The notes: a model not told the origin generated them from the sequence alone. Positions 9,684 through 34,639 are shown, counted from the stretch's first letter. The stretch: DNA of 64,000 nt from Trichosphaerium sp. ATCC 40318 (GCA_038496445.1 JALMLS010000257.1:1-64000), one strand, 5' to 3'. A program made the numbers and translations.

Positions 9684-9690
9684 TGGTTAT

Positions 9691-12041
9691 CTCTTTCCGG
9701 GTAGTAAGTTGAAAAATTATGGATAGTAAAATTTTTTAAACAGCCCAGAAACCCTCGCAATCCACTCTTGCACGTCCATAAAACCCAATGCGAGACCATA
9801 AAAGGTCATGTAAAAATAAAAATTATGGATAGTAAAATCGCGGATAGTAAAACGTTGTCAAAACTCCTTAATAATCTTCAAAAACTCATCACATACGCAT
9901 GATAAACCTGTTGCGCGAGCATCTCACTAAAAACAAAACAAAAATTACAAAAAAGAGAAAAAGAGCAACTTCAACACGTGGAACAACTAAAAAACGTAAA
10001 CTAAGCAACAAACAAAAATATTTGACAGAACTTCAAGAACAATTCAAGTACCTTCCTGAAAATGGCTGGAAGGTTCTTCCTGATAGTAAAATACATCTTC
10101 CTGAGGTTTTGTGGATATCTCGGCCTAACTATCGGAATTTTGCGCGCATAAAATCAAACACAGATGCGCGCACTTACACTCTACAAATTTATACCAATTT
10201 AATTAAAAAACATATTTGGAATCACGTGGTCAAAAAAACAGAAGCAAAGCGGAGAAAACTTATGGATCAGTTCACAGCGCAAGGCATAAAGAAAAATACT
10301 TGGTGGAACACTAAAATCAACCACAAGGAAGTTATGAAATTCATAGGAACAGTATGGCTGTGGGAGCAAAGAAGCGGAGAAAAAGAATATGAGAAAGTTT
10401 GCAACCAATTCTATGAAGCCAACCCAGATTGGTTGAAGAATAATTCCTTGTTAAGCCGAACAAGATTTTCGATACTGAAGGCTTGTTTCTCATCAGACAT
10501 TCAAGGATTATGTAACTTGTTGAGTGACGCATTTATGAGAGGTTGGTTACCAGGAGATACTTCCACAATAGATGAAACCATTTTCAAATTTTTGGGTCAA
10601 AGTCGCTATATTATGTATGTACCAGGAAAACCAAATCCAAAGGGTTTAATGATATATGTACATGCTGTATTCTCTGACAAGTATGGTAAAAAGCCTTACA
10701 TACTTGGTATCATTCCTCACTGGGGGGAATATCGTAAAGCTCCAATTTCTCCGCTAGATGCTGCAAAAAAATTAATTATAAAATTTGAACAATTTTATGA
10801 GTATACACCGCATGTGGTAATGGATTCAAGATTCATGGAGGGGCATCTGGTAAGCTGGGTAGCTGCAAACTCACAGAAGAGCAAAACTGGTGGCATTACC
10901 GCTGCTCTTCCAAGTTCACACCAGAAGGAAATATTCGAACCACTTTCATATGGCCTTCCATGCAACAGGTGGAGAATAGCAACTAACTCTGAGGGTAAGG
11001 TGGCGTCATTCATGCGTAAGAAAAATAACAAGGGTAAAATTGTTGAGTGGCGGTTGCTTGGATACGGCTGGAACACTGGTGAACCAAAACAGACTCCAAC
11101 TCCCGTGTGTTTGTCTGATTACGAAAAAATATGTGGATTATCTCGTGAAACTTTAGTTTTTTTGTCACGGAAGTGTAACGGACATGGTATTGGAAACAAT
11201 ATTGAATTAGCGCAAGAGTTGTGTGAGCTCTCACCTGAGAAAGTAATGGCATTAGTGGAGAAGAAAAGGCAGAAAGCATCTTTAGTTGAACATCATAGAA
11301 CGAGGAGTAAAAAACCAGAATTACATTGTTTTGAAGATTGCCGACACAATAGAAAAGAAGTAGAAGACAAACCGATGATACGATGCGATTACTGTGATGT
11401 ATGGTACCACTCTGAATGCCTTGATTGGGACAATAAGACGTGGAAGAGAAAAAGTAAGGCCAAAGAATGGTTCTGTGATTTGTGTCAAAAACTTTATACA
11501 AAAGTTTTAGAAGGACGTGCTCACCTGACCCCAGAAATGTTAGAAAACAAGAAAAAACCATTCTTACAAAGATATTGTAGTACGTTGGGCCTCAAACAGC
11601 AAGGAAACAGACAGGCATTGATCAACAGACTCACAAATGCAACAAATCCAGAGTGTTTACAAAATATTGACTCTCAATTGCAACATTTTTTGGGTGCTCC
11701 ACGTCGTGATAAACCTATTCTACATGACTTCTATAACCATACATTTTCAGCTATTGATAAGGCTAATCAGTTGAGTTGGTCAAACACAACATCCTGTAGA
11801 GTTACAAGTGATGAGTGCCGAATGACTTTGGGTTTGCTAAAACTGACTTTAACGTGCACACATACAATTTGTGACTATGTTCTTCAAAAAGATGCTTTGA
11901 GCTTTTCCGATTTACACTACCTTGTAGCAACACAGTTGTTTACAGGGAAACTTTTGTAAGTCATTTGAAGATAATGTAAGTTCAACCGTTGTCAATAAAA
12001 TTTTACTATCCATAATTTTTTTGGTTACTATCCATAAAGAG
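9691..12041 (+). mobile_element. Apparently intact piggyBac-related DNA transposon with imperfect ~45-bp TIRs and GTTAT direct repeats
   Basis: Left end: CTCTTTCCGGGTAGTAAGTTGAAAAATTATGGATAGTAAAATTTT. Reverse complement of right end: CTCTTTATGGATAGTAACCAAAAAAATTATGGATAGTAAAATTTT. GTTAT at 9686-9690 and 12042-12046. Extra GGATAGTAAAA copies at ~9827-9852. Confidence 0.9.
9899..11959 (+). CDS. piggyBac-family (PGBD/DDE_Tnp_1_7-like) transposase, 686 aa, with inserted PHD finger and SAP domain(s)
   Basis: Motifs LSRTRF, TIDETIFKFLG...YVPGKPNPKG (D225), VVMDSRF (D309), FYNHTFSAIDKANQ (D620). PHD C4HC3 at 11327-11485. SAP-like LQRYCSTLGLKQQGNRQALINRL. Basic N-terminal NLS-like tract; no introns. 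Confidence 0.88.
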   Translation: MINLLREHLTKNKTKITKKRKRATSTRGTTKKRKLSNKQKYLTELQEQFKYLPENGWKVLPDSKIHLPEVLWISRPNYRNFARIKSNTDARTYTLQIYTNLIKKHIWNHVVKKTEAKRRKLMDQFTAQGIKKNTWWNTKINHKEVMKFIGTVWLWEQRSGEKEYEKVCNQFYEANPDWLKNNSLLSRTRFSILKACFSSDIQGLCNLLSDAFMRGWLPGDTSTIDETIFKFLGQSRYIMYVPGKPNPKGLMIYVHAVFSDKYGKKPYILGIIPHWGEYRKAPISPLDAAKKLIIKFEQFYEYTPHVVMDSRFMEGHLVSWVAANSQKSKTGGITAALPSSHQKEIFEPLSYGLPCNRWRIATNSEGKVASFMRKKNNKGKIVEWRLLGYGWNTGEPKQTPTPVCLSDYEKICGLSRETLVFLSRKCNGHGIGNNIELAQELCELSPEKVMALVEKKRQKASLVEHHRTRSKKPELHCFEDCRHNRKEVEDKPMIRCDYCDVWYHSECLDWDNKTWKRKSKAKEWFCDLCQKLYTKVLEGRAHLTPEMLENKKKPFLQRYCSTLGLKQQGNRQALINRLTNATNPECLQNIDSQLQHFLGAPRRDKPILHDFYNHTFSAIDKANQLSWSNTTSCRVTSDECRMTLGLLKLTLTCTHTICDYVLQKDALSFSDLHYLVATQLFTGKLL

Positions 12042-12725
12042 GTTATAGCTCAAACCACTCCAAAAAACCCGAGCTATAAATAAAAAAAAACCACCGTTAT
12101 TCTACACATTACTTAGTGGGTGTAACAGGTTATACGGGCTGTTGATGTTTAGGTAGAACCTATTTAAATGTGTTTCTATTGGAAATAATGTGGTAGGACC
12201 AGTAAATTAACAATCAACTAATTTAAGTATCACACTGGGGACACATGTCAAACAGCAAAATAAAGTGTCATTCATAAAATAATACGGATGGATACTTAGT
12301 GATCTTTCAGGCGCTGTTGTACGCTATAACTAAGCCACGTGTTATTAACAAAAAGCCAAGTACGAACCTAGCCTATTTTTACCCCTTAGTCGCTGTTATA
12401 ACTCGAAATTGTTGGTATGACTCTGTACATTTTTTACTTAAACACGATTGAGTCCAAAAAACAACTAAAAAAAAACCGCTTCAAGTCACGTGGACCTGAG
12501 TAAGTCGAAATCGGTCACGACTTCCGTACAGTCGTTTAACAACTTAACAACCATTACTTTCTGTCAGCAAACGTCGTACAGCCGCTAAACGCCACATCGC
12601 ACCCACTTTAATACTGTTTTGCAGCTACAATATGTCAAGCCAAGGTCTAGTCGCCCATCAAAGGTATCATGCTAATATTGCTTTGTTTGATCATCTGACA
12701 TCCAGCTAGCACACCAATACATCTT

Positions 12726-13487
12726 TTGGAGTTACCTACAGAGATTTTGGCTCATATTTTATGTCACACGAATAAAGCACGATTTAAAGCTTGTCAAACA
12801 TGCCATCTCATTCATGATATCATTGGATACGAAAATGTGATGATATCATCTGTTGAACAAGCAAATGCGCTGTTAAAACACCATAGCACTCTAGAGCACA
12901 CAAAAATCAGATTACACTACAATTGGAGAGGTGATCTAACAAGGTTTGCTGGCGTTCATACCATCAATCTTGATTGTTGTAATAATATTAAAGGCAAAGA
13001 CATAAAACCCCTTGCTGGTGTTCATACTATCAATCTCGATTGTTGTTTTGGTATTAAAGATGAAGATATAAAGTACCTTGCTGGCGTTCATTCCATCAAT
13101 CTCACATGTTGTGGTATTACAGATGAAGGGGTAAAAGCTCTTTCTGGTGTTCATACTATAAACCTCAGTTCATGCCGTGGTATTACAGATGAAGGGATGA
13201 AATACCTTGCTGGCGTTCATACCATTGATGTTTCTCACACTTTGGTTACAGATGAAGGGATAAAAGCTCTTTCTGGTGTTCATACTATAAACCTCAGTTC
13301 ATGTGGTATTACAGATGAAGGGGTAAAAGCTCTTTCTGGTGTTCATACTATAAACCTCAGTTCGTGCCATGATATTACAGATGAAGGGATAAAATCCCTT
13401 GCTGGTGTTCATACCATTGATGTTTCTGGCACTTTGGTTACAATTAAAGAGCTACAAGCTCTCTCTGCACATACAATAGTTTATTAG
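12726..13487 (+). CDS. F-box + LRR protein (true start possibly ATG 12632 via a small intron)
   Basis: LELPTEILAHIL followed by about 8 GVHTINLxxCx(x)ITDEGVKALS repeats. The ORF as called begins at TTG. Confidence 0.8.
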   Translation: MELPTEILAHILCHTNKARFKACQTCHLIHDIIGYENVMISSVEQANALLKHHSTLEHTKIRLHYNWRGDLTRFAGVHTINLDCCNNIKGKDIKPLAGVHTINLDCCFGIKDEDIKYLAGVHSINLTCCGITDEGVKALSGVHTINLSSCRGITDEGMKYLAGVHTIDVSHTLVTDEGIKALSGVHTINLSSCGITDEGVKALSGVHTINLSSCHDITDEGIKSLAGVHTIDVSGTLVTIKELQALSAHTIVY

Positions 13488-14079
13488 AATTTACAAGACA
13501 TTGTCTGTTTATAAAAACTTTTACTATTTGTATAATGTTATATAACGCTCAATATCCTTGCCTAATAAGGTTATACTAGTACCAGATCTAGTGCTGTTAA
13601 TCAATTGACTTTTGACAAAAGCAATGTTACAAACGAGTATTTAGTGTAGAATAAATTCCTTGTGTAAGGAAACTTGTTGGCATACAATCTTGTTTTTTTT
13701 CTTCATTTACATGGTGGATGTTCTTTTTTTTGTACAATGATCTAAGATCAACGGGATCTATGAGAATACAAGATATACAAGTGAACAAATAGATAGACCT
13801 TAATTACATACAAAACATCTTGTTGTATCCTCTGTTACATCATCTACTGTGAAATCTCTTTAACGCTCTGCAATGTTTGTATTTTCTCTTCAACAAAAAA
13901 AACCAATTAGTTGAGCCTACACAGCATGAAGCTGAAATAGAGCCTGTAATACAAGGAGCTTGTAGGAATCCTACTGTAGATGATTTGAAGATGCCTCACA
14001 GAGAGAAAGCACAAACTTTTTGACTTCCGTTGAAACTATTACTGCCACATACACAACATTAAAGGCATAATTTTGCCAA

Positions 14080-14317
14080 ATGGAAGGAGAATTAAAAATC
14101 CCGATTGCCGACTTGTTTCGCTGCCAGTGAAATAGTTCAATTCTTAAACAAAGAAGGCGTATGCTATGTTCAGCTCAAACACTTTCTACGTAATATTGTA
14201 CACAACCACATTGGATACACCGGTAGGACTAAGATCTCGGGTGTTGACCTTGACTATGTTGGCGTCTTGCTTGGTCAGTGTTGTTCACACAATATATTCA
14301 TCTGTGTTCAACTGTAA
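14080..14317 (+). pseudogene. Frameshifted F-box remnant of the F-box/LRR family
   Basis: Nucleotide similarity to the 5' part of the 9120 gene (gttcagctcaaac...actttctac...cac...ggata) with indels; ...FLRNIVHNHIGY is retained but no LRRs follow. Confidence 0.6.
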
Positions 14318-14493
14318 ATTACATTGAAAAATCCGAAAATTCATTGAAATACCATTAATGGACCACAATGGAGTTTTTCACAACATTAATGGCTGTCACA
14401 TTAGTAATCCGCAACACTTGCCACTAACCTTGTAGTGTTGTTCAGCATAAAGAAACGTCCGATAGGTTTTTTTCAATAATTAATTAAACGACG

Positions 14494-15201
14494 ATGGAAC
14501 AACCGCTAAACTTACTTTCTCTGCCTCCGGAGCTTCTATACGACATTGTAGACTTTGATTTCAAATTATACATTAACTGGCCTCTAATATGCTCTCACCT
14601 CGCTTTAACGTCTAGATTTAATACGGAATATGATAAGCACGGTAAGTTTAATCAATATTATCCAGATGGAACTCTTTGCGCTGTCGGAAACTTCGAACAT
14701 GGTAAAAAACACGGAAAGTTTTATTGGATGAACGAAGATGGTAAAGTTCTTTCTGAAACTCTATTTAAGGAAGGTCTACAGCATGGAGAACAAATTCATA
14801 GATACAGCAGTGGGTCTTTGATATGTATTGATAATTTCAGCTTCGGATTACAGGATGGTGAACAGAAAAGTTACTTCCACAATGGGAGATTAAAATCAGT
14901 TTCTCATTACTCGAAAGGAAAAAAAGAAGGTGAGTTTAAGAGGTTCTCTAAGAATAAAGATCATAAGTTAATGGAAGTAATACAATATAAGAATGATAAT
15001 AAGCATGGGGAGTGTTATATTTATCATGAATATAATGATGGTAAGGATACTCAAGTGTGGGAAGATGGGTTTTGTGTTGAAATAAGACATAAGTACCGAG
15101 GTGCATTAAAGATTACACGTTATGATAAGAATATAACTTGGTTTTCACGACACATTAAGGAATGTATGTTAGAAGAGTTATTAAAACAACGAGATCAATA
15201 A
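14494..15201 (+). CDS. Intronless F-box + MORN-variant repeat protein
   Basis: LLSLPPELLYDIV followed by repeats of the G..HG....YY..G type (GKKHGKFYWM, GLQHGEQIHRY, GLQDGEQKSYFHNGRLK, GKKEGEFKRF). Confidence 0.85.
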   Translation: MEQPLNLLSLPPELLYDIVDFDFKLYINWPLICSHLALTSRFNTEYDKHGKFNQYYPDGTLCAVGNFEHGKKHGKFYWMNEDGKVLSETLFKEGLQHGEQIHRYSSGSLICIDNFSFGLQDGEQKSYFHNGRLKSVSHYSKGKKEGEFKRFSKNKDHKLMEVIQYKNDNKHGECYIYHEYNDGKDTQVWEDGFCVEIRHKYRGALKITRYDKNITWFSRHIKECMLEELLKQRDQ

Positions 15202-15680
15202 AAGAGATAGTACAGTTTACATGAAATTGATTTATCACATGTTTAAAGAAATTAACAAGACTCGTTGAGTGAACACTGTAGAGCATAGTTAGCACGTATA
15301 CCGTTTTGTTGGTTTTATTAGTATTACGTGTAAGCAGTCCTCTATAACTACTCAGTTAGTATACAAAAATTCTTACTGCAATCAGCGAAGAACCACCTTC
15401 AAATCATGAATATTTTTTTGGGATGTTTTGTACATTACCTAGCCGAACTTGTTACTTTTTTAGTATGAAACATTCCCACGTAGTAACATAATGATGTGAT
15501 CGTGAATCTCACTAACAGATTAAAACATAGATTGTATTAATAAACCAACAATTAAACAAACAGACACGTGTACCCAGCTCCATAAAGAAAGCACGTTATT
15601 CTCAACAGTTTTTTTTAACATGTGATGTCTTCTCTGAAAATTGAGAGCGGTCTTGTACGTCCAGAGGGGGCACGTTCTCT

Positions 15681-17210
15681 CTAAAACAGAGGGAAATATT
15701 GACGCTCGATATACCTTTTTCCTTTTTTGCCTGTGAGAGGTGATTGATACTTCTCTCTTACACCTTTCTCAACAATAAATCGGACTCCTTTAAGCAATCT
15801 TACACCTCTTTCAGTAACTTGTCCACAATTGCGTACTCCAATTGCATAGACATCAGTCAACACCTTTAGAGCATTATTTGTAATATGGATACATTCACTC
15901 AAGTCAATTGTATGAACACCACCCAATGCCTTCACACCCACATCTGTTATAGCAGTATTTGTAAGATCTATAGTATGAACACCTGTCAACGCCTTTACAC
16001 CATCATCAGTAACAGCAGTTGCTACCAGACATATTGCATGAACACCAGCCAATGCCTTTACACCCTCATCAGTCACGTTTGTGTACCTAAGGTTAATAGT
16101 GTGAACCCCTGACAGTGCTTTAATTCCGACATCTGTAATATTGTTACAACCTTGTAAATCAATTGTATGTACACCAGCTAATACAATCAATTCATCATCA
16201 TTCACTCTTGTGTGAGAGAGAAACACAGTATGAACACCTGCCAGTGCTTTACAACACAGTGGTTTACAATAGCATAGCTTAATTGAGTGAACTCCAGTCA
16301 ACAATTTAACACCTTCATAAGTAACTTTTGTTTCCTTCAAGCTTATTTTATGAACACCACACAAAGCTGGCAAACACCTATCTGATATTGGAGTTTCATC
16401 TAATGTAATTGTATGAACGCCAGAAAGTGCTTGGACACCCTTGTCCGTCACGTATACACATCCAGTTAAATCAATTGTATGAACACCAGACAATGATGCA
16501 ATGCCTTCGTCTGTCACATGTGAAGAATGAAACAATACAAGTTTATGAACACCTGCCAACGCTTTAATGCCAACATCTGTCACATCTGTCATTGAAAGAT
16601 CAATTGTATGGACACCTTTTAAGGCTTTAACTCCATCGTCAGTTACTTTTGTACAGCTAAGGTTAATAGTATGAACTCCTGCTAATGTCTTTATGCCTTC
16701 GTCTGTTACATTCATACATCTTTCTAAGCTTATTGTATGAATACCACACAAATACTTAACTCCAATGTCTGTAATATATGGTGAAGTTATTGAGATACTT
16801 TGGATTTTAGGAAGGTAAGCTAGGTGATCATCTCTTAATCCATAAAAAGCAGAGAGGTCCAGAGTATCAGTAATGTTGAAGCCTTTCCAGTTTAGTATTT
16901 TAATATCATAAGGTTTGAGGTAGTAAACGCCTTGTAGGTATTTTAAGTGACTCTGTTTAAGAGTAAACTGGATGATGACATTATGTGTTTCAATGAGGTG
17001 TTTTGCAGTTTTGAATAGCTTTTTAAGCTCCTTTGGAGTTGAAAGGACGATATCTCTTCTGTTTGAGTATCCCACATGCTCTGTAATGACGCTATTTAGT
17101 ATTTTAGATACACGTGCTATGGAGTGCATAGTTAACGTTGAAATGAACTGTAGGATGTGAACAATAACTTCTACAGGGATTTCATCAAAGAAGGCTGTAT
17201 TTTGGTCCAT
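15681..17210 (-). CDS. Intronless F-box + LRR protein, 509 aa
   Basis: FDEIPVEVIVHILQF followed by roughly 15 GVHTIxL..T/C.VTDEGVKAL repeats. Confidence 0.9.
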   Translation of the reverse strand: MDQNTAFFDEIPVEVIVHILQFISTLTMHSIARVSKILNSVITEHVGYSNRRDIVLSTPKELKKLFKTAKHLIETHNVIIQFTLKQSHLKYLQGVYYLKPYDIKILNWKGFNITDTLDLSAFYGLRDDHLAYLPKIQSISITSPYITDIGVKYLCGIHTISLERCMNVTDEGIKTLAGVHTINLSCTKVTDDGVKALKGVHTIDLSMTDVTDVGIKALAGVHKLVLFHSSHVTDEGIASLSGVHTIDLTGCVYVTDKGVQALSGVHTITLDETPISDRCLPALCGVHKISLKETKVTYEGVKLLTGVHSIKLCYCKPLCCKALAGVHTVFLSHTRVNDDELIVLAGVHTIDLQGCNNITDVGIKALSGVHTINLRYTNVTDEGVKALAGVHAICLVATAVTDDGVKALTGVHTIDLTNTAITDVGVKALGGVHTIDLSECIHITNNALKVLTDVYAIGVRNCGQVTERGVRLLKGVRFIVEKGVREKYQSPLTGKKGKRYIERQYFPLF

Positions 17211-17484
17211 TTCGTTTATATTTCAATTTATTCTTCTTAGGTTTGTGTTACGGAACAGCAACTGTTCTAGAACGATATATTATAGCAAATAAGCCGCATT
17301 TTAAAGGTATGTACTTAACCTCAGGCTTGGGAGGCAGGTTTTTTTTGTTGCTTTAAGACTTGAACACGTGCGTTCTATGGAGTCGATAACATTGGTATAG
17401 CTGTCTTACAAGTACAAAAAACTATGCTGGAAATGTCATTTTGTAGTTCATTATTCCGTATTATTTACCCGAACACTAATAATA

Positions 17485-19587
17485 TTAACAGCACATTACA
17501 TCCATTTCCATAAACTCATCGTCCTATGAAGGATACGATATTCAATGCAGTACTTTGGTTCATTGTAAACTCATATTCCGTCAATAAGTCACGTGACTAT
17601 TGAATTGGAGATATGCTTCGTTCAAAAGGGCAACAGCAGTTCAACTATTGTACAGGACTACCTATTTCAATAAAATTTACACTAACATATTTCACATCTA
17701 GTTAACAGTTTCTGACGTTCATGTACAAAGGCATGCCATGAAATACAGTTCAAGAGATTGGTTAAACTGAGCAGTGTTTATGGACTTATTACACGGTACA
17801 TTACTATCAGCCATAAGCTACGCCACCATAATACATATGATGTATAGTACCCAGTTGACGATAAACACTTATACTTGTTGCCTAGGTACAGAATGCCTTG
17901 TGTTTCGAGGATTGCTACAAAGTAAAAGATGGATGAACAGTCATTCTAGTTGTTTTTTTTTTGGTTCTTCGTACCTGGCTTGACTACAGAACAACCCTTC
18001 GGTGTAGACACCGATATATTTGATGTATCGTCTATTTCGCAGTTCTTTGAAAAGTGAATGAGTGTCAGCGTTTCAGCTGTATCATTGAGTTTAAACGTGA
18101 GGCCATTGAACGATGGACATCCTTTCAGAATAATCTTGGAAAGGTCATCAACAAGAATTATCGAACCAGTGAAAGTCACGTTACCTAGTATGATATTTTA
18201 TTAATAAACTATTATGATGTATTTTAGGGTTACCGTTTGAAGCTAATGTGATTCCACGAAAGTCCAGGGTACCACTGAATACAACTGTAGTTTCATTTTC
18301 AAACATGCAAAATGATTGATTTAAGCAATTCGCTCCTAAGTCAACCAATATTTGCGTTACTGAACTTGATGGTTCCGAAGACTGAACAGTAGGTTCAGCA
18401 CTTGGTGTTGTTGCTCGTGTAGGTTGTCCAGGAATGCATTTTCCGAACTCTGTTGTGTTTATGTTAGTTGATATTTTTGGCTAAAGTTGTTTTTCTGAAG
18501 CTACACCTCCTACTTCGTAGATTTGTTGAATGGTACTCAAATCGAGAGCCTTATTATAATAGGATAACTGATATATTACTGGTTAGATTGTATATGCGCG
18601 TATAAGAAAGAACGTACTTCATCGATGCTAAGTGCTAGCTCTCCTCCAATAGTTAAAGGTGTCTCTGGAGTCGAAGCACAGCAACTTATTGTTTGACTTC
18701 TGCTCGATACATCTGTACCATTGACTGCCAACAGAATATCACCTTGCCTCCTTTTGTTATAAACACGTTAGTGAATCAATTATTGGTTTCAAATAACAGT
18801 CCCCCCTGTTTGCCCACAGGGGGGACATAGTATAGTATAGAGTACCAAGCGATAGAAAGTGCGAAATGATGCCATTCATTTGTCCGTAAAAAAACTGTAT
18901 TTGAGCCTGTTTGTATGCTTGTAGAACGTAATTTTACAGTGAGGTCTATTGATCCAAATTCACTTATAGATAGTTTGTATCCTTGTGTATCGATAAAAGA
19001 AACTAAGTCAAGTCCACCACTTGAAGGTAGTTCTAGTATCATTGCCCAAAACTCCAAAGTGAAGTCACCTGTTCAAAAAAACCGTTAAAATGCGAAAAAA
19101 AAGTGAGCTGTGTTTGACGCACCGAGGTCTTCGCCAACCGTATTCGGCATTGTCATCAAAAGAGAAGCATTCGAGAGGGTAATACCTGTACCTACAACGC
19201 CCTGAAATTGGTCAGAAAGCGAATCTCCAGACAGCAGTCGAAAAGTTACTTCACTCTTCATTTTGTAGTTCACACGTGATGTTGGTTTTTTTTTTTCAAA
19301 CAAATCTGCTTCGAAAGCTACTTGTGATCACGTGGTGGAAAATGAAGAACGTGTTCCTGTAAAAATATGGGAACAAAACGCTGAAAAAAAAATTTGCGGG
19401 CAAACAAACATACCGCTGTGTGTACTGGTAACCCTGTAAAATTAGAAACCGTTTCTGAATTGGAGAATACGTTTACACCAAGATCATTGTTATCAAAAGT
19501 ATACCATTCCTTCAACGACTCATGGGCTATAAGACATTCGCCAGTTGTAGTAGCTATATTACATAATATCAGTAGTACAAGATACAT
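17485..19587 (-). CDS. Multi-exon secreted/membrane protein with LamG (concanavalin-like) domain and probable C-terminal TM helix
   Basis: Signal-like MYLVLLILCNIA; WYTFD, FTLEFW, NEWHHFALS, PLTIGG, IDE|LSYYNKAL are LamG/pentraxin-like motifs; hydrophobic stretch near the 3' end. Confidence 0.65.
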
Positions 19588-20341
19588 TGTAGGTGAGATG
19601 CGTCAAGAGAAAACCGCCGCACAAAATTGCTAAAACTGCTCCAGCTTAAAACAAGTCAAACTATTTCAAGAGCGAAAGGCCAACGCCTGTAGAATGTGTT
19701 AAGTAATACTCTGATGCACTATTGTAAACAACAACTTTAGGAACATGAAAAGATATCTCAAACTTGTTATCAAATCACTAGTGACCCTATGGAGGCTATC
19801 TATCAGAATCGAAAATTGTGAGAATTACCATTAATGCCACATCCGACTTAGACTACAGCGACGGTCTCGTTTCGAACCAGTAGTGTGGCGTGTGTCAAAA
19901 AAACTGTGAGGCAATTGTGTATCACTACATAAGTAAGCTGTGGTCAAAATATGAATCGTACATGTGTTGACTGCATTACAATCTCGTGTGAAATCAAGAA
20001 AATATAAAGGATTTCTTTCCTAATCTAAGGCTCGTACCGTTTTGCAAGTTATATTCTTTGAGTGCGCTATTTGGTGCCTCAAATACCTACAACGATTCAG
20101 GCTACCATCCATTGTATAAAAAATGACAACGATTGAAGGTTCACAAGAAATTGGACTGTCAATAACAAACACATGGTGAGTACATAGGTTGGATGAAAAG
20201 GCCTATTTGTTTATGATATTTTGATAATACTGGAAGGAGTTGATTCAAAGAGAATTTGATTTATGAATTAAGTAAAACTGTAATACTACAATCTAGTTTC
20301 ATACAATCACGGACTGTCCGTCTCTTAGACATATCAGAGCA

Positions 20342-22006
20342 TTAGGCAAACAAATAGCTACTTCCAATATCGTCACCAGAATCCAATAGCACCAGAATTG
20401 GATCAACTATATTTACACCATGTTCACTTAACATCTCCAAATATCCCTCATTACCAATTATCTCAAACACAATATTCTTCACACCAACTAACATATTGAT
20501 ACCCTCCAGTGTTATTTTGTTGCATTCACACAGAGAAATCGTGTGTACTTTAGACAACACCTTGATACCTTCATTGGTTATACTGCACTTATCCAAGTAA
20601 ATAGTATGTGCATCTGACAATGCATTCAAGCATTTATCCGACACGGTTGTCTTCGAAAGATGAATTTCATGTACACCTTTCAATATCTTAACGCCATCAT
20701 CTGTTATTGATGTGCAACCATTCAGATAGATAGTGTGTACACCCTCCAAAGCCTTCAAACCTTCATCTGTTATTTGATCACAACCATTCAAGTTTATAGT
20801 GTGTACGCCCGCCAAAGCCTCCAAACCTTCATCTGTTACTTTTGTTCCTTTCAGCATAATCTCGTGCACTCCAGCCAATGCCTTGATTCCCTCATCAGTT
20901 ATTTTAGAACAGTCCTCTATGTCAATGGTATGTACACCTGCCAATGCTTTGATGCCTTTATTTGTTATTAGCTTGCAACCACACAAATAGATAGTGTGTA
21001 CACCTGCTAAAGCCTTTAAGCCTTCATCTTTTATTGCTAAGTTCCTACTCAAGTCAATAACCTCTACACCAGCCAATGCTTCAAGATGCTCATTGGAAAT
21101 ATTAGAAGACTGTAAAGATATTTTTGGTATTCCAGAAAGTGCCTGCAAGTCTTCAGTTGACAACCTACAATCATCCAAGCAGATTTCTTGTACGCCTGAC
21201 AATGCTTTGAGGCCCTTGTGTGTTATTTCTAAACTCCTCTCCCACTTTTTTTTATAGATGTGAACACCTGCTAAAGCCTTCAAACCTTCATCTGTTACTT
21301 CTGTACCCGATATATCTATTTCATAGACTCCAGCTATTGCCTTTAAACCTTCATCTGTTATTTGAGTACAATCAGTAAGATCAATCGTATGTACACCTGC
21401 CAAAGCTTCCAAACCTTCATCTGTTATTTGATCGCAACCATCCAAGTTTATAGTATGTACACCTGCTAAAGCCTCCAAACCTTCATCTGTTATTTGATCA
21501 CAACCATACAAGTTTATAGTATGTACGCCCGCCAAAGCCTTCAAACCTTCGTCTGTTATTTCTTCACAACCATACAAGTTTATTGTATGTACACCCGCCA
21601 AAGCCTTCAAACCTTCATCTGTTATGTCTGTAAGTGCTAAGTTAATTTTATGCACTCCTGCCAATACTTTCATTCCCTCATCAGTTATTTGTTGACAATT
21701 GATCAAGTCTAAAGACGTAACTCCCGAAAGTAGGTGCAAATGATTGTCTGAGGCGCCTCCATTAATGCAACACAATGAAATACGCGTATTTTTAAGTAAA
21801 GGGCTACCAGAAAGCCGCATTAACTCTTTTTCGCTCAAAACAGTGATTTTATTGTATCCCACATGTTCGTGGATGATATTTCGCAATAAATGGCACGTTT
21901 GGGCTGAACGTAGGGTGAAAGTCCCGCATTTTAAGATATGAACTATTGTTTCTACTGGTAGCGCAGTGAGTCCAGGTAAATAATACTTTGAGCCAGCATC
22001 CTGCAT
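20342..22006 (-). CDS. Intronless F-box + LRR protein (~554 aa from ATG 22006)
   Basis: LTALPVETIVHIL followed by roughly 18 LAGVHTINLxGCxxITDEGLxA repeats, several near-identical at DNA level (~21400-21620). Confidence 0.9.
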   Translation of the reverse strand: MQDAGSKYYLPGLTALPVETIVHILKCGTFTLRSAQTCHLLRNIIHEHVGYNKITVLSEKELMRLSGSPLLKNTRISLCCINGGASDNHLHLLSGVTSLDLINCQQITDEGMKVLAGVHKINLALTDITDEGLKALAGVHTINLYGCEEITDEGLKALAGVHTINLYGCDQITDEGLEALAGVHTINLDGCDQITDEGLEALAGVHTIDLTDCTQITDEGLKAIAGVYEIDISGTEVTDEGLKALAGVHIYKKKWERSLEITHKGLKALSGVQEICLDDCRLSTEDLQALSGIPKISLQSSNISNEHLEALAGVEVIDLSRNLAIKDEGLKALAGVHTIYLCGCKLITNKGIKALAGVHTIDIEDCSKITDEGIKALAGVHEIMLKGTKVTDEGLEALAGVHTINLNGCDQITDEGLKALEGVHTIYLNGCTSITDDGVKILKGVHEIHLSKTTVSDKCLNALSDAHTIYLDKCSITNEGIKVLSKVHTISLCECNKITLEGINMLVGVKNIVFEIIGNEGYLEMLSEHGVNIVDPILVLLDSGDDIGSSYLFA

Positions 22007-23376
22007 GTTTGATGTGAGCAAAATGTTAAAAATGACTTAAGTGCACCAGTTAGGCCTTAAAAAATTGACTTCGGATAAACAATTCTCTTTGAACTTATGA
22101 TTGTTTGTGAAGAACTCAGGCAAACACTTCTCGGCAAAAACTGTCATCAGAAGTGAAAAGAATATCTATATCCATTCGTAAATCCTTCTTGCAGGTTGAT
22201 TTCCTGATTTTGAGACCTTACCTGACTTCATGGTGTTTTGAGTGAACGGTTTCCGTTATCGCCAATGGTTAATGGACAAAGATATTGATAGTAGTCTCCG
22301 TCATCACTACTTCAAATATTGTAGTGCCGCTGTCAAAGTTTAGGTAAGAAGTTTAAGCTGAGTCTGGATATACTCTGTATGACGGAGCAAATACAATGGT
22401 TTCACAAGTGATGAATTGCTTGGTAGCACTTTGTTTTCCGGGCTTTTTGTCCAATTAGAGAGATTCCTAGTGTTAACAAACAACAAAGAAATCTCCACAA
22501 AGCTCGCCACAAGTTTTCTTGAGTAGGTAAAAGCTATCGTCATTGTCTGACTTTTTTAGTTCGGGTTTGTAAAGAAGTTGTGTTAACACATTGCCACACG
22601 CATAGGCATCTCTGTTGGTACTCGTTCAGCGTATTCCTTCGGATAAATGAGTATATCCGCGAGCTTTGAGCTATTTCGACACTTATATTCTATTGCGACT
22701 TTTTGTACGCTGATACGCACGCATTAGCTCTTATCGAGTCTAGCCCTGAGTTTCCGAAGCTATTAAGGTGTGTTACATAATTGCTTCTATTTGTGGCATT
22801 TTCGTACTAAACACCCGCGCATTGCGTTAAACTCAACGCAAACAAGTCTTCGCGCCCTTTTTGAGTTGACCTGATACGTGTTAACAAAACTGTCACTTTT
22901 TTACGTACTACCGCTTCGTTAACGAAGATAAAGCGCGTATCTTCGCCTTAAAACTATGAGTTCCATCAGAGAAAACCATTTACAACTTTGTCTAAATAGT
23001 TTTCGTTAAACAACGGTTCATCGTTAACTTTTTAAGTAAAAGACCACACGAGCTGTTTAGAAGTACAATGGTATTTCTAGACCAAACGTCAAAAAAGGCA
23101 AAACGGCAAGCGTCATAATGCAAAAACAGCAATTTACGATGAACCGTTTTGTTTTCCTTTTTCGGGCCTCACACGGATACATGCTCCGCTTAATAACCAT
23201 ATCATGACGGGTATCAATTTTGCCTTTGGCGTAAATAGAACAAAGACGGAGAAATATGTTTCTTAAAAATCTCAAACATGCCTTTTAATAAATTTGATAA
23301 AAAAAAATAGGAACAAAAAAAATCATTAAGCAATAATCAACAAGCGTTAAACAACAACTCATCAAAACAACACAAA

Positions 23377-23798
23377 ATGAACATATCCGAACTACTCAAC
23401 CCAAGCGCCGTACAACAACAACAACTTGTACAACAGCAACAACAACATAGAGACGTAATATTAAGCCAAAACCGAAAAATGAGCGAAGAGAATGTTCCTT
23501 ACAATCAATGCAGTACGTTAACGTTACACAACGGTTTTTCTTTCTGTTTTTTCAAAAAAAGAAAGTTTTTGTACTAACACCTTGCTCATTAGTATCTCGA
23601 TTCAGTGCTAAGCGTAATAAGAGGACCAATAAAGCCATTGCGAGTAATGAGGAAACTCATATCAAACGACAAGGAGATATAAACGGCCCTTTCCAAATGA
23701 ACTATTATCGTATAACGTTAAACTACAACAATAAGTATAACACAGAATCAACGGACATACAGCTCTTCGAGTTCACACCGATGAACAGGCGTCTTTAA
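23377..23798 (+). CDS. Small Q-rich protein, one intron, N-terminal MNISELLN motif
   Basis: ATG in A-rich context; GT...AG intron ~23513-23592 joins two ORF halves; flanked by a long upstream non-coding region. Confidence 0.55.
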
Positions 23799-26082: not shown

Positions 26083-26159
26083 AAACAAACAGTTATTGTA
26101 TATCAAGACACACCACGCTTGAAATTAAGTTTTACAGTGCATCCATCATAAGTTTGTTC
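26083..26159 (-). promoter_or_regulatory. SECIS element (type II) in the 3' UTR of the GPx fusion gene
   Basis: Minus strand reads AACAAAC-TT-ATGAT-GGATGCACTGT-AAAA-CTT(aatttc)AAG-C-GTGGTGTGTCT-TGAT...GTTTGTT. This gives helix I, the AUGA/UGA core, an 11-bp helix II (several G-U pairs), unpaired AAA and an apical mini-stem. Confidence 0.85.
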
Positions 26160-26438
26160 TCCGTTTTTTTTTTTGTTTTTGAAAACAAAAAAGTGAGAAA
26201 GAATGATTTTCTTCTTAACTTATCATCTAACCCTGCTGTTATTTGATAAGTTTCTTGCAGAATTCACAATGGTATATATTTAATAAATCTAGTGAAAGTG
26301 TAAGTAACGAAGAAAGAAAAGAAACGAAGAAGTAAACAAACAAAAAATTGGTTTGCATTTTAGAACTTTCATATTTATGGTCTATGTTGCTAACGTACGA
26401 TATTAAATATACTGTGAGTAGCAACAACAACATCTTGT

Positions 26439-28889
26439 CTATAGATTACTCTGCAATAAAATGTTAGAAAGAACGTATAAAGTCTAGAAAATGCAAAATA
26501 TCTTCGTTTGACAATACCTTCTTCTCAGAATCTTCAGAGTCTTCCTTGGCACTTTTGTTAGTGCTTGGAGGTACTGGCTCTTCCAATAATAATTTAATGG
26601 TCTTGACAAGCTTCAAAGGCTTCATAGGAGGACTGTAACGCTTTACTGGCTTTCCACTTCTATCAATAAGAAATTTTGCAAAGTTCCATCGAATGGTACT
26701 ACCCAGTGGTCCTGAAAGGTTCTTTTTAAGGTATCTATAAAGAGGATGGGTGTTTTTTCCATTCACATCAATCTACAAACAACCACGTGAGAAATAAATC
26801 AAACCAGAAAAAAATGACAAAATAAAAAGGCGTTTCTCTTTCACATGTGACGGCTAAATATTGTCCCGTATTACTATAAAAAGCATCTCGGAAGTAATAC
26901 GACAGCTCTGTGATAGTTTTTTTTTTGTAAAACTGGGAAGAATCTTTTTAAAACATACCTTGCTGAATAACTGAAAAGTAACATTCCATTTTGCACTAAC
27001 TTCTGCCTTGATTTCGGCTTCTGGTTTAGGTTCTTGTTTACCAAACTACAAGAAAAATTAGCCAGTCTCACCCCAAGCATAGAAAAACAACAGAGCTTAT
27101 ATATCACGTGACAGCATCATATTGGAAAAAAATTTACTTACTTGGTTGCAGGGAAACGCAAGAATCTCCAACCCACTTTCTCCGTATTCTTCATAAATAC
27201 TTTGAAATTGCGTATAGTGGGCTATGCAAGAGTCAAACAAGGAAAACAAGACAACAAAAGTTTTTACAACTTTGGTAAGGTCGGAAAATCCAACGAATAC
27301 ATACCTGGGGTTAGACCTCAGTAGGTCGCAACGTTCGTTATAATGCAAACTTTACCCTTTTAGGTTCATGAGTTTAAAACAATTATAAAATAAATGTACT
27401 TTGTATTTGCTTAACGAAACGTTGTTACCATCAATATCGAGTGCCTCGAAGTCATATATAGAGTCCGCTGACATTTGTGCGGATGTGGACTACAAAGAGT
27501 GAGCAAAAAGTTCTCAAGGGCAAAGAAGTGCGTACGTTTTCTTCAGCGAATTTGACGCCAACTTCTGCCAAGGCACTTAACCACTCTTCTTGTTCAGACG
27601 TGCTTGATGCGCAGATACTATGCTTTTTCCTTTTTTTACCTAATCACGTATTTTATATTAGTACAAACTCGAACACACGTGACCAAACGACATTAAACAA
27701 AATAAAATATAGTAAAAACCTGAAAATTTGAGACTAAACTAAAGCGCTTACCTTCTCTAACAGTCCAACAATATTCTCCTTTCTTACACTCACAATCAGC
27801 GCCAATCAAATCAGTGTTATTAAGATTGATAAGAGACTTAGGTGACGTAGACTAGACGCAAAAAACAGTAAGAACGTAGCAAAGTATTTCCGAAGAAAAA
27901 AAAAATGGGAGGAAAGGGAGAAAAAAAAATCCGATAGTTCTGCCCAAGAATTACTTCTAGCACTACCGCGACGCGAAAAAAGTTGATACAATCCGTTTGT
28001 AGTAAAAAAAAATGAGAAAGTAAAGTACCAGTTCAGACTCAAAGAAGTATAGATGCTTCTTTTGTTTATCCAATACAGCGTAACGCTCACTCCAGAATAG
28101 GATACCTTTTTTCTTTAGTTTACCTGCTCTTGAGATGACTTCGCCTAAATTTAATTAGAGAAGGGTTACAGTACAAAAAGTACTACGGAACGACATGCTA
28201 TGAAGTAGTAGAAACGTTATGGAAGGTAAAGAAGGCTCAAAACCGACAACAAGACAAGCTATTTAAATTTCCGTCCGAAGAGGCAGACAGCTTTTCAATG
28301 TTGTTATTTAAACGTACTTTTCTTAAGAGAAGCTACAGAGGGACCTCTCTTTGCGTCTGTATCATCCTCCTATAACTCAGGTAAGTTTTAGAGTTTTAAT
28401 GAGTAAATTAAAAAGTCAGAGAGCCTGGTTATCTTACGTTGAACCGATAAAATAGTTCCTCGTTCTTAAAATTATGAGCGTCTTTAACGTGGTGGAGCAA
28501 ATCAGCGTCCATCATCATTTGTCCTTTTGACGTTATTTTAGTAAACGAAAACCGCCTAAACAACGTACCTAGCGAAACTGCGAGGTTTGCATCCTCTGCA
28601 AAGCCGTGCGTGACCAACCAAGCTACACCTTCGGTTCCTGTTGTTTAAAATGTTATTTATTGCTTTGCAGTACTGTTGACGTGCCAATAAAACACTTTGG
28701 GTTCTTTTGAAGATGGTATCTTCTATCTTTAATGGAAACGCCATCAATAGGGTCGCGCATCTATCAACATGGTTATCGAGTGAACTAGACAATTATACTT
28801 ACTTTATCTACAATACTCTGAAAAAATGCCTCCGTCATCTCTTTGGTGGAGGTAAAATCGGCCTCATCAGAAGCCTGATCCTCTTCCAT
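26439..28889 (-). CDS. DEP domain + PH domain + selenocysteine glutathione peroxidase fusion, multi-exon
   Basis: DEP: GVSIKDRRYHLQKNPKCFIGTEGVAWL...LLHHVKDAHNFKNEELFYRF. PH: WSERYAVLDKQKKHLYFFESE...SASSTSEQEEWLSAL. GPx: SIYDFEALDIDG..., NVATY-TGA-GLT (TGA at 27320-27318), LAFPCNQFG, IRWNFAKFLIDRSG. Confidence 0.85.
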
Positions 28890-29143
28890 TGTTAACGGAA
28901 GGAAGACGTAATACAAATATACCGACGGTCGCTATTTCCCCAATTAAGTCAAGTGTGCCAAAATTGTTATCCATGACGTTTAATGACACTATTAGTATTT
29001 GTGATACACGGCAATCAGTGGTTGAGTCTTGCATGGCAAACGTTAAAAAAAAAAGACTCAAATAAAGCTAAGGCATCGAGCAATACCCTTAAAATGCTGT
29101 TGTATTGGTGTATTAGCGTGTGAGAATTGCTATGACTCATTAA

Positions 29144-30333
29144 CTCTTTACCTGTAACAAAAAAAAAAGTTACCTGTAACAAAATTGTCCCATACATATT
29201 TCTCAGCGCCCTCTTTTCAACTTTCTCTGATATGAACATAATCCGTCCCAATCATGGTTGTAAGTGTGAGGCGCACACCATAATGAATTTAGCATTTGCC
29301 AACAAAGCTGTCGAATCAATTAACTGATCCCAATTTTTCCATTTTTTTCGCTAAGTGTTTATAATTTTAGATTTATATTCCATCTTTTGACCACACACCA
29401 CTATGTTAAGCTTCTACGTGTTGTAGTGAATGACATGCAATAATAAAATCTATAAATGGAATGTTTTATAATGGTAATGGAGTTGGGTCACATTGCAAAA
29501 ATTACTTAGAAATTTTTTCTTGTTTTTTTCAAATTTGTCACATGTGGTATGCTGACTCTTGAATTTAAATTGTACTAAATTCTATTTCTAGATGGTATAT
29601 ATAGCTCATATACAAGCTTTAAAGTTGAATTTTGAATACGAATTAGCTACCAGCACGTCCAGAAAATGTATTTTTGTGATATTTGCATGTTTTTAAAACG
29701 CTGTTTTTGTGCTACAATTCAACACGTGTTCAAAATTTCAACTATGAACATTGACCACACACTGTATTGTTCGTTCTCAAAAAACTTTTTTGGAGTACAA
29801 AGTACAACATTGCTGCCAAAAACTGTGTTTTTTTGTTCGCTCCAAATTTTGTTTCCCAAAGTGTTTGGATAAAATTATCCAACGTACTACACTTTATCAA
29901 GTGTCTAGGTAGTGTGAAGATGTACTGGCCTCGGTATTAGTGGTAAGGGGTACAATTAAACAAATATATATCATTAAAACTCGATAAAGTTAACCAATGA
30001 CCATGACAAGGCTTGCTATTATCTTTCCAGCGCCTAAAATTCGTGTTATGTTACTTTTAGCGTAGTTTACGCTTGTGTTAGCTTATTTTAACGGTTTTTT
30101 GTAAACCTTGCTGTAAGCGGTATTATACGTTTATTAGGCGCTAAAAAATCAGATGCTGTGCGTATTTACGCTAGTGTTAAACAGTGTATCAGATTAGGGT
30201 TTATTCTGCTTATTTGCACTTTTGCGTGGCTACAATAGGTAATTAACATTGTTTTAAGGTCATTTTAGTGGTCAATAGTGAGTTTTGTTGAAACATGTTA
30301 CAGGTAATTTTTTTTTTTGTTACGGATAACGAG
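29144..30333 (-). mobile_element. Non-autonomous, decayed piggyBac-related element A (1190 bp), ATTAA direct repeats
   Basis: Left end CTCTTTACCTGTAAC-A10-GTTACCTGTAACA; right end TGTTACAGGTAA-T11-GTTACGGATAACGAG. ATTAA at 29139-29143 and 30334-30338. Patchy internal similarity to element B in inverted orientation. Confidence 0.85.
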
Positions 30334-30375
30334 ATTAAGAATATTTTCATGCTCGCAAAACTGATTACACGCACA

Positions 30376-32247
30376 ATGGCCGAACAAACTCCACAATACG
30401 CAAAGTCGTTTGACATTAAAGACGTTGAAGGTTATGTAAAATACTTTAACGAGGTTTGTACACTTTATTACGCAATGTACCTCAAAATTATCGCTAAGAA
30501 ACACTAGAATGGATATGTGGTTATTGGTACAATTTTGTGGTAAATTACGCCTGTTTAACTCTATAGATAACGTAATCACGGAAGAAGCGTCTCGTATATC
30601 TAAGGACGAAATGTGGGCATATATAAAGCATAAATCGCAAGGTACACGCAAAAAAACGCTTTAGTCTAACAAAATTACAGGCAAAGTGGACAGAAATGAC
30701 TCTAAGACATGGTTGAATGATATTTGGCCAAGAGACATTTGTAGAAACGGAGGTGAGAGCAAACTGTTATTTTCTTGTTTTTTTCCTCACATTCAAAGAA
30801 TTCCATGTTTACGTTTAACTAGGCTTCATGGGTCGATTTCCATACATGAAACGTATTAATGTTGCAAAAGAGCTAATACCAGAGCAACCACAGGTTAGTA
30901 CTATCAAAGATAAGCTTAGAATAATCTATGTTGTAAACATTTGGTTAGGCTTGGAAAAATCGCGAAAATCCGCTTGTATATGAAGCCTTTGCTAATGTAA
31001 TGGCAAACAAAAAGCTATGGGTATCCATAGATAGATATGGAGTTATGAGACCAACCGAAATAGGTCAAGGTATGCAATAAACAGAAAAATAGCATCAACT
31101 ATAAAAAAAAGTTTCACGTCGCTTCAACTCATTTTTTGTCACAAAGAAATTGTTGGTTCCAAGGATGAGACCTTACAAGAAGACTGGGCAACAAAAAAAG
31201 ATTGGTTACATTGGGATTTGTCACCTTTCCATTATGCAACATCAGCTGCAGGTTAGTGTCACAGTGTGCTTATTATCTAAAACAAAAAAAACTAACTCGT
31301 AGAAATAATTATAAACTTTTTTGGCTCTATGAGCTACCAGTACTCTTTCCTGGTATTTAAGTTTTTAGGATTTGCACCACGTGATGTTCCAAAAGACAAA
31401 CTAGCAGAATCATATGGCAGTAGACGTGTACAGGGTCTTATAACGCTAACTGATTGCAAGTCCATCAATGGAGGATTTCATTGTATTCCAGGATTCCATG
31501 GTTCGTTTGGAGCACTACTGTTGAGATAATGTTAATAATAAATATAGGAAAGAGATTTGAACAATGGGGTAAAGATAATGCAAAGAGGTATAGAGCACAA
31601 ACCGAATAATAGCTCTCATGTTTTTTTTTCATGTTTTTTTATTGGATACTGCTGTATCTTTTATAGTGGCCTACCGGCCAGTAGTTTACTTATATTCATT
31701 TTTTAGTTATGGTTCAGATAAGAGAGTATATAATAGAAACTTTGTAGAAGTACCTGATGATGATCCAATGCGTAAAGAGTGCACTCAAGGTTTGGAAAAA
31801 AAAAACTGAACGGAGAATTGATTTGTCTTACTTTAGTATTTAGTACCAATGCGTGAACGCTCCCTTCTCATATGGGATAGTCAGTTACCACATGGTATGT
31901 AATAAAGCCTACCTCAAAAGAGAATGTTAAAATGAGTTATCACACAGCGAGCTGACTTATTTTTTTTAAAGGTAACTTTCCAAATCACAGCAAGCAGTTC
32001 AGAATGGTTCATTACATAAAGATGATACCAGCAGACGATCCTCGCGAGTTCCAACCTGTATTTCATTATACTAAAGCTGACCCTAAAGAGTGGTTTGGCG
32101 ATAAATATACGCCTTCTCCACTTGGTGTACGAACGGATTTTTAGTTGCTGTTTTTTTTTTTATGCGGAAATCAATGTGCTGCTGAACTAATGTTTGTTAT
32201 CGTAGGAAAAACTCTTTGGTTTGAAAGAATGGACAGAATCTTCTTAA
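30376..32247 (+). CDS. Phytanoyl-CoA dioxygenase (PhyH)-like 2OG-Fe(II) oxygenase, multi-exon
   Basis: YFNE|NGYVVI, LWVSIDRYG, WLHWD (HxD), RVQGLITLTD...GGFHCIPGFH, LLIWDSQLPHG|NFPNHSKQFR. Confidence 0.8.
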
Positions 32248-32633
32248 GGGCTCTTAAAGAGTATTGGTTTTATTTACACGCTTAACATTTGAGTTGTTAA
32301 CTTGGAAGTGACAAGGAATGAACGACGGCGTCGGTCGCAGATTGTCAAATAAAATTATGCATCAGGACGTGAGCGTTTGTAATGCCCCACCAAATCCCTT
32401 ACTTAGGTACTGGTGTTACTCCGTTAACAATTGAAGGTTTCTTTAACAACTTGTACTTGTACACAACGTATTTTGTTTTACGCGTACAATAGTGTTTCTG
32501 ACGATGGAGCAAGCGTTGGTTGTATCAACTTTTAACCTTTAACGCCAACAGAGCACCTTAAACCGTGCTGTAAGTAGAACTGTTAATATTTCTACCAAGG
32601 TACAGACTCAAAGCCATCAGTGAGAAGTATTAA

Positions 32634-34168
32634 CTCGTTATTCGTAACAAAAAAAAAAATTACGCGTAACAAATTTTAATAAAAACCCCTGTTGACCATG
32701 ACAACATTAATACCACTACATTGGTTACCTATTCCAATAGTTTAAAAGTTGCTTCACGCAAATTAAAACCCAAACCGTTACACAATCATGAAATCGCGTA
32801 AAAGCCGTGCTGCTATGCGTCAATTACTGCTTGACAATGCAGCCGGATGCAGGAGCAGGCGATAGCCTAAAATCGCTAAAATATCGTGCACTCAGACATA
32901 AAACAAGCTAAAAGCCAACAGGAAGAGACAAATGCAAATGACAGAGCAGAGTGAAAAGCTAAACAAAGTTATCGATGAAGGTTGGCGAGTGTTGACATAT
33001 GAGCAAATTTTCCTTCCCCCGAAATTGAGCACATCTCTAAACCCAGTAGCAAAACTGGGAGTTCCAATACAATGCAAAGAAGTGTTTGAGTGGTTGGTAA
33101 TAAGTCAGAATTAATTGATAGACTTTTAAAGGCACGTGATCCTACTTTTGAAAACAGCTTTAATATCCATACTAAGCTAGTTTTTGGGGCTGTTCAGCTG
33201 TGATACATTCATTTTATACAACTCACTTTGATGTTGTTGATCATGCTAATCAAACTAAATGGAGTACTTCAATGCCTGGGCAGTGTATAGAGCAAAACTA
33301 TCGAATGACTGTGGGAATTATGAAAATGACAATTACATCCCCCGTGGCCATCACAGATTACAATATAGTATCAAAGTGTCCTGACCATGGTCAAATACAT
33401 CTTGTACTTGCAAAGGCCTTGTTTTGTGGTGATGTTTATAATTCTGAATAAAGTGTATTTTTTTTTTGTTGGACACCCAAAAAACAATCCAAAAAATGCT
33501 TTCACCAATAGGTAACTTTAAAAAAGATGGTGTTAGTTGAAGGAGATGCTGTATTTCAGACGATCAAATGATCAATATTGACTAGGTGCACAATATTAGC
33601 ATAAAAATGAATTGCTACATACACACAAAAGAGACAAAAAACTATTTTCTGAACCTGTTTGTAGCTAACTGTAACAAACCTTTTACATCTAGCACTCATA
33701 TATAAGCAATATAAAGATGTTAGAAAGTGAAATTACTAAAAAATTTATTCAAGAGTCTGTGTAGTACATGCGACAACTTTGCAAAAATCAAAAAAAACAA
33801 TCTCAACAATTTTTGAGGTGTCTGTCAATTCTGTCATTACACTAAAAAACTTCAAGTTTAATGAGGTTTGTTTAATACCATTCTATTTTATGTGTTGTAT
33901 ATATAAACAACAATGCTTGGACAAAAGATGGAATATTATTGCAAACTTTATAACAAATACCGAAAAAACCCACTAAAATTGGAATCAGTCAGCTGACAAT
34001 GCTGGCTTGTTCACAAATTCCATGATTGCATCAAAGTATATCCTGCACTTGTAGGCATGATTAAAACGTATATGGCGTTTCTCAAAAAAAAATAAAACAA
34101 GGACACTGAGTCACTTGCCCAGGAAAAATTTGTTACGCGTAACTTTTTTTTTTGTTACGCGTAATGAG
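32634..34168 (+). mobile_element. Non-autonomous, internally deleted piggyBac-related element B (1535 bp), ATTAA direct repeats
   Basis: Left end CTCGTTATTCGTAAC-A11-TTACGCGTAACAAATTTT; right end AAAATTTGTTACGCGTAAC-T10-GTTACGCGTAATGAG. ATTAA at 32629-32633 and 34169-34173. Contains transposase remnants. Confidence 0.9.
32788..33451 (+). pseudogene. Internally deleted transposase pseudogene homologous to 9899..11959
   Basis: EGWRVLTYEQIFLP vs NGWKVLPDSKIHLP; GNKSELIDRLLKARDP vs GNRQALINRLTNATNP (SAP); IHSFYTTHFDVVDHANQ vs LHDFYNHTFSAIDKANQ; RMTVGIMKMTIT vs RMTLGLLKLTLT. Stops and frameshifts present; the central catalytic region is deleted. Confidence 0.85.
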
Positions 34169-34639
34169 ATTAAACGTTTCACTCCAAATGTATTTCTGTG
34201 CAAACTTTATTCTACCCTCAGATGGGTAGAGTATTACCATGTTAAAATAATCGGCTTTGGGCTTTCGTATTACTTGCCGTACTTGACCATCACGTGTATG
34301 CCATTCAAAAAAAGTCTTGTGAATGTCACCTGTTCTTCGCACGTGTGGGAATCTTTGAAATATGCCACTTCAAAATCACGTGTCGGATACAATTTCGTCA
34401 ACAGTTGTGCTTATATTCTTTTAGAAATATACAGACATAACACCAATAGCAACGCTTCTTAATGTTTCTTAACGCAATAAATTTAACTCTATTCATACTC
34501 ACATTACAAGTGGCATTGGTATATACACAACCAAGTTGTCAGAACGTACTCAACTGGCCGAGTGATCCTAGAAGACCTAATCTGTACGTTCTTGCAACAT
34601 AACTCATAGACAATTTCTCTAACGGTTTGTGCTAGAGTC

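Follow-up and report, generated by a model that had tools for sequence, protein, structure and literature searches.

Evidence for a 5-bp target-site duplication in a divergent piggyBac-related transposon clade represented in Trichosphaerium sp. ATCC 40318

A stretch of 64,000 nucleotides from Trichosphaerium sp. ATCC 40318 (GCA_038496445.1, JALMLS010000257.1:1-64000; hereafter the window) carries three DNA transposons, E1, E2 and E3, of which E1 encodes an intact transposase with the piggyBac fold. Transposases of the piggyBac family are used in genome engineering. Duplication of the 4-bp target TTAA is the defining property of piggyBac, and structures link this duplication to seamless excision (PMC7351741). 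In this study, we observed that the three elements and their relatives have CTC...GAG termini and probably duplicate 5 bp of target DNA with the consensus NTNAN. The probability that we assign to the 5-bp duplication is about 0.85.

Results

Junctions of E1, E2 and E3

E1 occupies 9691-12041 (2351 bp) between exact copies of GTTAT at 9686-9690 and 12042-12046. E2 (29144-30333, minus strand, 1190 bp) is flanked by exact copies of ATTAA at 29139-29143 and 30334-30338, and E3 (32634-34168, plus strand, 1535 bp) by exact copies of the same pentamer at 32629-32633 and 34169-34173. In each case the maximal exact flanking repeat is 5 bp, and neither 4 nor 6 bp fits. All three elements start with CTC, end with GAG and possess imperfect terminal inverted repeats (TIRs) of 38-45 bp. 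When CTC..GAG pairs were scanned across the window for terminal identity and flanking repeat, the ends of E1, E2 and E3 ranked first (13/16 identity). The three junction pairs had been reported in the initial annotation, and all of them were recovered at the same positions with exact 5-bp repeats. The left junction of E1 is identical in a contig of run X2 (9547-9741), which may be the source sample. A chance match of the fifth base in E1, E2 and E3 has a probability of about 0.019, which decreases to 0.005 if the outside locus L031 is included, a decayed CTC..GAG element with ATTAA on both sides that lies on a 102-kb contig from another sample.

E2 and E3 have ~550 bp in common at 65% identity and lie in opposite orientation. 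Read in the orientation of the element, the target copies are TTAAT for E2 and ATTAA for E3, and a 4-bp reading therefore puts the spare base on different ends of the element. The three elements had initially been described as related. This holds for their end architecture, but past the ends no DNA similarity of E1 to E2 or E3 was detected; E3 is linked to E1 by protein, and E2 via E3.

The E1 transposase and its ends

The left TIR of E1 (9691-9735, plus strand, 45 bp) is 84% complementary to the right end and comprises the CTC end and two GGATAGTAA-type motif copies with an A-rich spacer between them. The right TIR (11997-12041, minus strand) has GAG as its end. Extra subterminal motif copies are present at the left end only (9810-9851, plus strand; motif at 9825-9827 and 9842). 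A single, intact and intronless open reading frame (ORF; 9899-11959, plus strand) encodes a piggyBac-like DDD transposase of 686 aa (PF13843, E 1.6e-7), whose catalytic residues, aligned with the piggyBac motifs, are D225 (10571), D309 (10823) and D620 (11756). Between the second and third catalytic Asp the protein harbors a PHD finger (aa 481-529, 11339-11485, plus strand; PF00628, E 2.1e-6). The same insertion contains a SAP domain (aa 550-581, 11546-11641, plus strand; PF02037, E 3.8e-5, just below its cutoff), which was found in 19/59 aligned relatives. E1 thus appears, from its sequence, to be a full-length and possibly autonomous copy. In run X1, a contig with the left part of E1 and an internal deletion has a depth of 15.9 versus 2-4 for window-identical pieces; depth is a weak measure, and this hints at a multicopy non-autonomous E1 derivative.

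A profile of 59 relatives matched the T. ni piggyBac structure 6x67 at E 8.7e-30. The predicted model of the E1 transposase (mean predicted local distance difference test score, pLDDT, 84.8) matched the fold of piggyBac with Z 28.3 (364 residues, root-mean-square deviation 3.3), followed by piggyBat (26.9) and Tn5 (16.5). The length of the omega loop is kept (D225 to Y240 in E1, D268 to Y283 in piggyBac), and Y612-N613 of E1 match Y439-N440 of piggyBac. R275 and K290 of piggyBac are replaced by L232 and P247, and both replacements are general among the relatives. The E1 protein stops at residue 686, two residues past the part aligned to piggyBac residue 514. The C-terminal cysteine-rich domain is absent, and the internal PHD finger is the sole Cys-rich domain.

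Relatives of E1

A full HMMER search recovered 141 proteins, nine of them with E < 1e-30; the relatives that were looked up all derive from metagenome or sequencing-run assemblies. In contigs of the closest relatives, six families with recognisable ends were identified. Since their copies diverge exactly at CTC and GAG, the ends could be fixed without assuming a duplication length. CTC..GAG termini are found in all clade families. The usual end begins with CTCN and a TT-initial motif, which an A-rich spacer separates from a second copy ~22-23 bp inward. A tree of the catalytic core united E1 with the CTC-ended families M1, M2, M5 and M8 in one clade (support 99/91). This tree comprised divergent relatives only, with no canonical piggyBac or IS1380 sequence; eight C-terminal fragments, the M7 protein included, were excluded for insufficient length, and the underlying alignment did not contain M6. 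No relatives were found in viral contigs, in plasmids (tblastn) or in a TIR pattern search of prokaryotic genomes. Word-index protein searches yielded nothing with E1 or a narrow alignment and one distant match with a wide alignment, but as sequence length and word sharing restrict such searches, these blanks say little.

Flanks of outside copies

The initial annotation had proposed to align the flanks of further copies. The 21 outside junctions that we aligned gave a 5-bp register and a symmetric NTNAN target. All 11 distinct left flanks had T at -4 and A at -2; all ten right flanks had T at +2, and seven of them had A at +4. Three further right flanks were excluded from these statistics: that of L009 continues into the interior of the same element, that of L014 continues into the element's left end, and L032 has a degenerate GCG end. 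Left and right profiles agreed best at an assumed duplication length of n=5 (0.54, versus 0.38 for n=4). The n=4 register was rejected (T in 11/11 versus 2/10, Fisher p 0.0002; second position p 0.001), lengths of n=2, 3, 4 and 7 were all rejected with p about 0.001 or lower, and n=6 was rejected at a single position (p 0.004), whereas no position led to rejection of n=5. Provided that both flanks sample one duplicated target, only n=5 lines up these columns, as fits a 5-bp target. The 5-bp frame accommodates each of the 14 left flanks.

NTNAN describes 20/23 sites, with a lean to T at position 1 and A at position 5, and TTAA is contained in only 7/23. The target RTTAW, derived initially from the window, describes its three copies; as a consensus it was rejected, since it fits only 4/23 sites. 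The base that follows GAG varies within near-identical families and is thus not element DNA. Together with the opposite orientation of E2 and E3, this agrees with the earlier suggestion that the extra base belongs to the target. The broader claim, of a lineage related to piggyBac that duplicates 5 bp, is likewise supported by the transposase fold, the repeat at L031 and the register of the outside junctions.

E2 and E3

E2 has TIRs of ~38 bp and is inverted relative to E3; neither tblastn nor comparison with clade proteins revealed a transposase remnant in it. E3 is internally deleted and, by sequence and protein comparison, belongs to a sister family of E1. Transposase remnants in differing frames (32926-33436, plus strand; tblastn) match many clade proteins: an N-terminal remnant at 32926-33036 (tblastn E 0.14), a SAP-end remnant at 33096-33143 and a C-terminal remnant with the third Asp motif at 33200-33436 (C-terminal pieces, tblastn E 2.3e-10), all on the plus strand. 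The central catalytic region is gone, and no second gene is evident in the segment common to E2 and E3. Judged by these comparisons, neither E2 nor E3 is autonomous, and both belong to a sister family whose terminal motif differs from that of E1. As the terminal motifs differ, the E1 enzyme is probably not the mover of E2 and E3.

The outer ends of E2 and E3 form an ATTAA-flanked inverted pair (29144-34168) of 5 kb with host exons inside, which could in principle move as a composite. The host gene between them (30378-32290) is apparently multi-exon, and by eye E2 is inserted ~40 bp upstream of its possible start codon.

More distant families and the host setting

A more distant family (P0149/P0160, L017-L026) encodes a piggyBac-like SAP transposase and has TTCCCC..GGGGAA ends. 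Its four types of left flank have A at -3 and its four types of right flank have T at +3; in an open frame, CC on the left is matched by CC on the right. These flanks suggest a duplication of 2 bp, except for one contig type, which reads 3-bp ATT. In the P0025 family (L028-L030), which has CTTT..AAAG ends, left flanks end with AT and right flanks start with A. One flank joins a right end (L033:2075-2110) and, reversed, a left end in another assembly (L035:1-30). At this shared flank L033 shows the tandem TTGAA TTGAA, and a DDE_Tnp_4 gene follows; either two insertions occurred at one spot in opposite orientation, or the tandem is a 5-bp footprint. The right flank of an M2 copy (L011:2359-2400) looks by eye like the 3' half of a tRNA-Asp from the anticodon on.

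The host is an intron-containing eukaryote, as seen from a GT..AG skip at 8346-8616. The window carries a cluster of F-box/leucine-rich-repeat genes with 63/66-bp units (9063-9683, 12726-13487, 15681-17210, 20342-22021 and 48821-49765), and E1 lies directly past the stop of one such ORF. Coding-like tandem arrays were observed at 43410-44333 (24 bp), 36459-37331 (15 bp) and 54305-54750 (24 bp); the 15-bp-period array translates as a Pro/Thr-rich repeat.

Discussion

Weighing the length of the duplication

Several observations weigh against a uniform 5-bp duplication. None of the nine short contigs that hold both ends has an exact 5-bp repeat, and at L004 and L008 only near-repeats with a mismatched first base are present. 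The right flanks GTTTAA, TTTTAA and ATAGAA fit a 6-bp frame better (3/13 right flanks fit NTNNAA). L014 reads an exact 4-bp TTAA, its right side running into its own left-end interior. Only four loci are true pairs, ATTAA being the 5-mer in three of them. Contigs of the only three public runs that share a small part of E1 contained no empty site, and a search for reconstructed empty sites gave no paralog across a junction and no clear reading frame by which the duplication length could be tested. A stagger that is mostly 5 and sometimes 6 or another length, or imperfect repair of the junctions, with 5 bp as the mode, would accommodate the mismatched contigs and the 6-bp flanks, and mixed lengths are on record for KolobokP (PMC9587614) and IS481EU (PMC10045372). 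Against such variation, the four reliably paired loci are all exactly 5 and the left flanks keep the 5-bp frame in 14/14 cases. L007 and L011 share a left flank and differ on the right; the mismatched pairs are therefore probably collapsed multicopy assemblies. Different right flanks on one left flank were seen in the TTCCCC-ended family, too. We consider variable stagger an unlikely explanation, although the one that fares best besides a fixed 5-bp duplication.

An ordinary 4-bp duplication of TTAA or TTAT, with one additional element-encoded or asymmetric terminal base, appears considerably less probable still. TTAA or TTAT is contained in all three repeats of the window, L014 can be read in this way, and 4 bp is the rule in canonical piggyBac (PMC10813416, PMC10045372). 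However, E2 and E3 would carry the extra base at opposite ends of the element, copies within a single family differ in this base, the outside flanks reject the 4-bp register, and most sites lack TTAA. That the ends come from another 5-bp superfamily such as Transib, for which the account in PMC1131882 gives 5-bp duplications, and that the piggyBac-like ORF is mere cargo, is very improbable: the termini do differ from the CC..GG of piggyBac, but this ORF is the sole transposase and makes up most of the element in every family, ends and transposase go together across the clade, and E1 lacks the RAG1-like transposase of Transib (Z 5.1 against HzTransib, versus 28.3 for piggyBac).

Relation to known systems

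With piggyBac (6x67) and piggyBat (9c0f), E1 shares the DDD triad, the fold, the omega-loop length, the Y-N motif ahead of the third Asp, internally repeated motifs in the TIRs and an A/T-rich target, at 18% identity over aligned residues. In contrast to their 4-bp TTAA and CC..GG, the E1 clade has a 5-bp NTNAN and CTC..GAG, and E1 has its PHD and SAP domains within the core and no C-terminal cysteine-rich domain. E1 has a PF13843-type DDD transposase with the piggyBac fold and the three Asp motifs. Duplication length, termini and the C-terminal domain depart from the canonical pattern, and we therefore regard E1 as piggyBac-related and do not file it as canonical.

According to reviews, piggyBac and its distant relative IS1380 both have 4-bp duplications and CC..GG ends (PMC10045372), 5'-CC..GG-3' being the piggyBac norm (PMC10045372, PMC10813416). 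A survey of 212 animal piggyBac types revealed only 4-bp variants (PMC10813416). Like the E1 clade, some members of animal piggyBac clade E and Pokey depart from TTAA (TATG, CTAA, ATTA, TCAA), but all of these departures are 4 bp long and have CCC/CAC termini (PMC10813416). Duplication length does vary inside other superfamilies (PMC10045372, PMC9587614), and ISEcp1 of the bacterial IS1380 family has a 5-bp duplication, TATGA (PMC2887853), which is a precedent for this length. ISEcp1 resembles the E1 clade in this length; however, TATGA deviates from NTNAN on both strands, and E1 possesses eukaryotic accessory domains. The E1 protein had no match to the IS1380 model and none to plasmids by tblastn.

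In the literature that was searched, with Repbase Reports and most subscription papers outside its scope, no piggyBac with a 5-bp duplication was found. Repbase also holds piggyBacA and piggyBacX, divergent piggyBac-like groups with non-standard ends or duplications. We found no paper on a clade of this kind, related to piggyBac, ending in CTC..GAG and duplicating NTNAN, and the clade is apparently undescribed, the Repbase groups piggyBacA and piggyBacX standing outside this comparison.

A possible mechanism

In piggyBac, the 3' end is nicked, a hairpin is formed four nucleotides into the flank and opened, and the ends attack TTAA in a bent and unpaired state; hairpin and target alike are gripped by the omega loop (R275, Y283, K290) together with Y439/N440 (PMC7351741). 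Most probably, the elements described here move by cut and paste and belong to a divergent clade, related to piggyBac, whose insertion involves a 5-nt stagger; the simplest model is otherwise the piggyBac pathway. By analogy with piggyBac biochemistry, the transposase would bind the two motif copies ~22-23 bp apart at each end, nick at the GAG 3' end and release the ends through hairpins, and both 3'-OH ends would be joined to phosphates that lie 5 nt apart in a bent, A/T-rich target (PMC7351741). Only T2 and A4 of the target would be under strong selection. As positions 1, 3 and 5 vary, donor overhangs would rarely pair with a new target, and it would therefore be left to the host, by flap removal and gap filling, to complete the insertion and thereby fix the 5-bp duplication. 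Should the hairpin, too, be cut at 5 nt from the element, complementary donor ends would result and excision would stay seamless. We infer the 5-nt stagger from the duplication length and the hairpin chemistry from the predicted fold. Some of the residues that contact the hairpin in piggyBac are kept in E1. Since the length of the omega loop is unchanged, the sequence does not reveal what widens the stagger.

Implications

A wider reading, which we put forward tentatively and hold to be rather doubtful as a whole, is that E1 represents a widespread, undescribed branch in microbial eukaryotes that adopted a 5-nt stagger and NTNAN, dropped the C-terminal domain and kept hairpin-coupled seamless excision. 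Neighbouring branches may use yet other staggers, as suggested by the probable 2 bp of the TTCCCC-ended family. On this reading, the stagger would be an evolvable trait of the piggyBac fold. Annotation pipelines that demand TTAA and CC..GG would miss or mis-trim such elements. With its 2351 bp and no intron, E1 is a compact, intact candidate, although its value as a tool is speculative; if the wider reading is true, its transposase would be scarless, with a target set far denser than TTAA. A clade of the same fold with 5 bp and a two-base rule would make the residues that set stagger and specificity testable, and also whether seamless excision requires a fixed target sequence.

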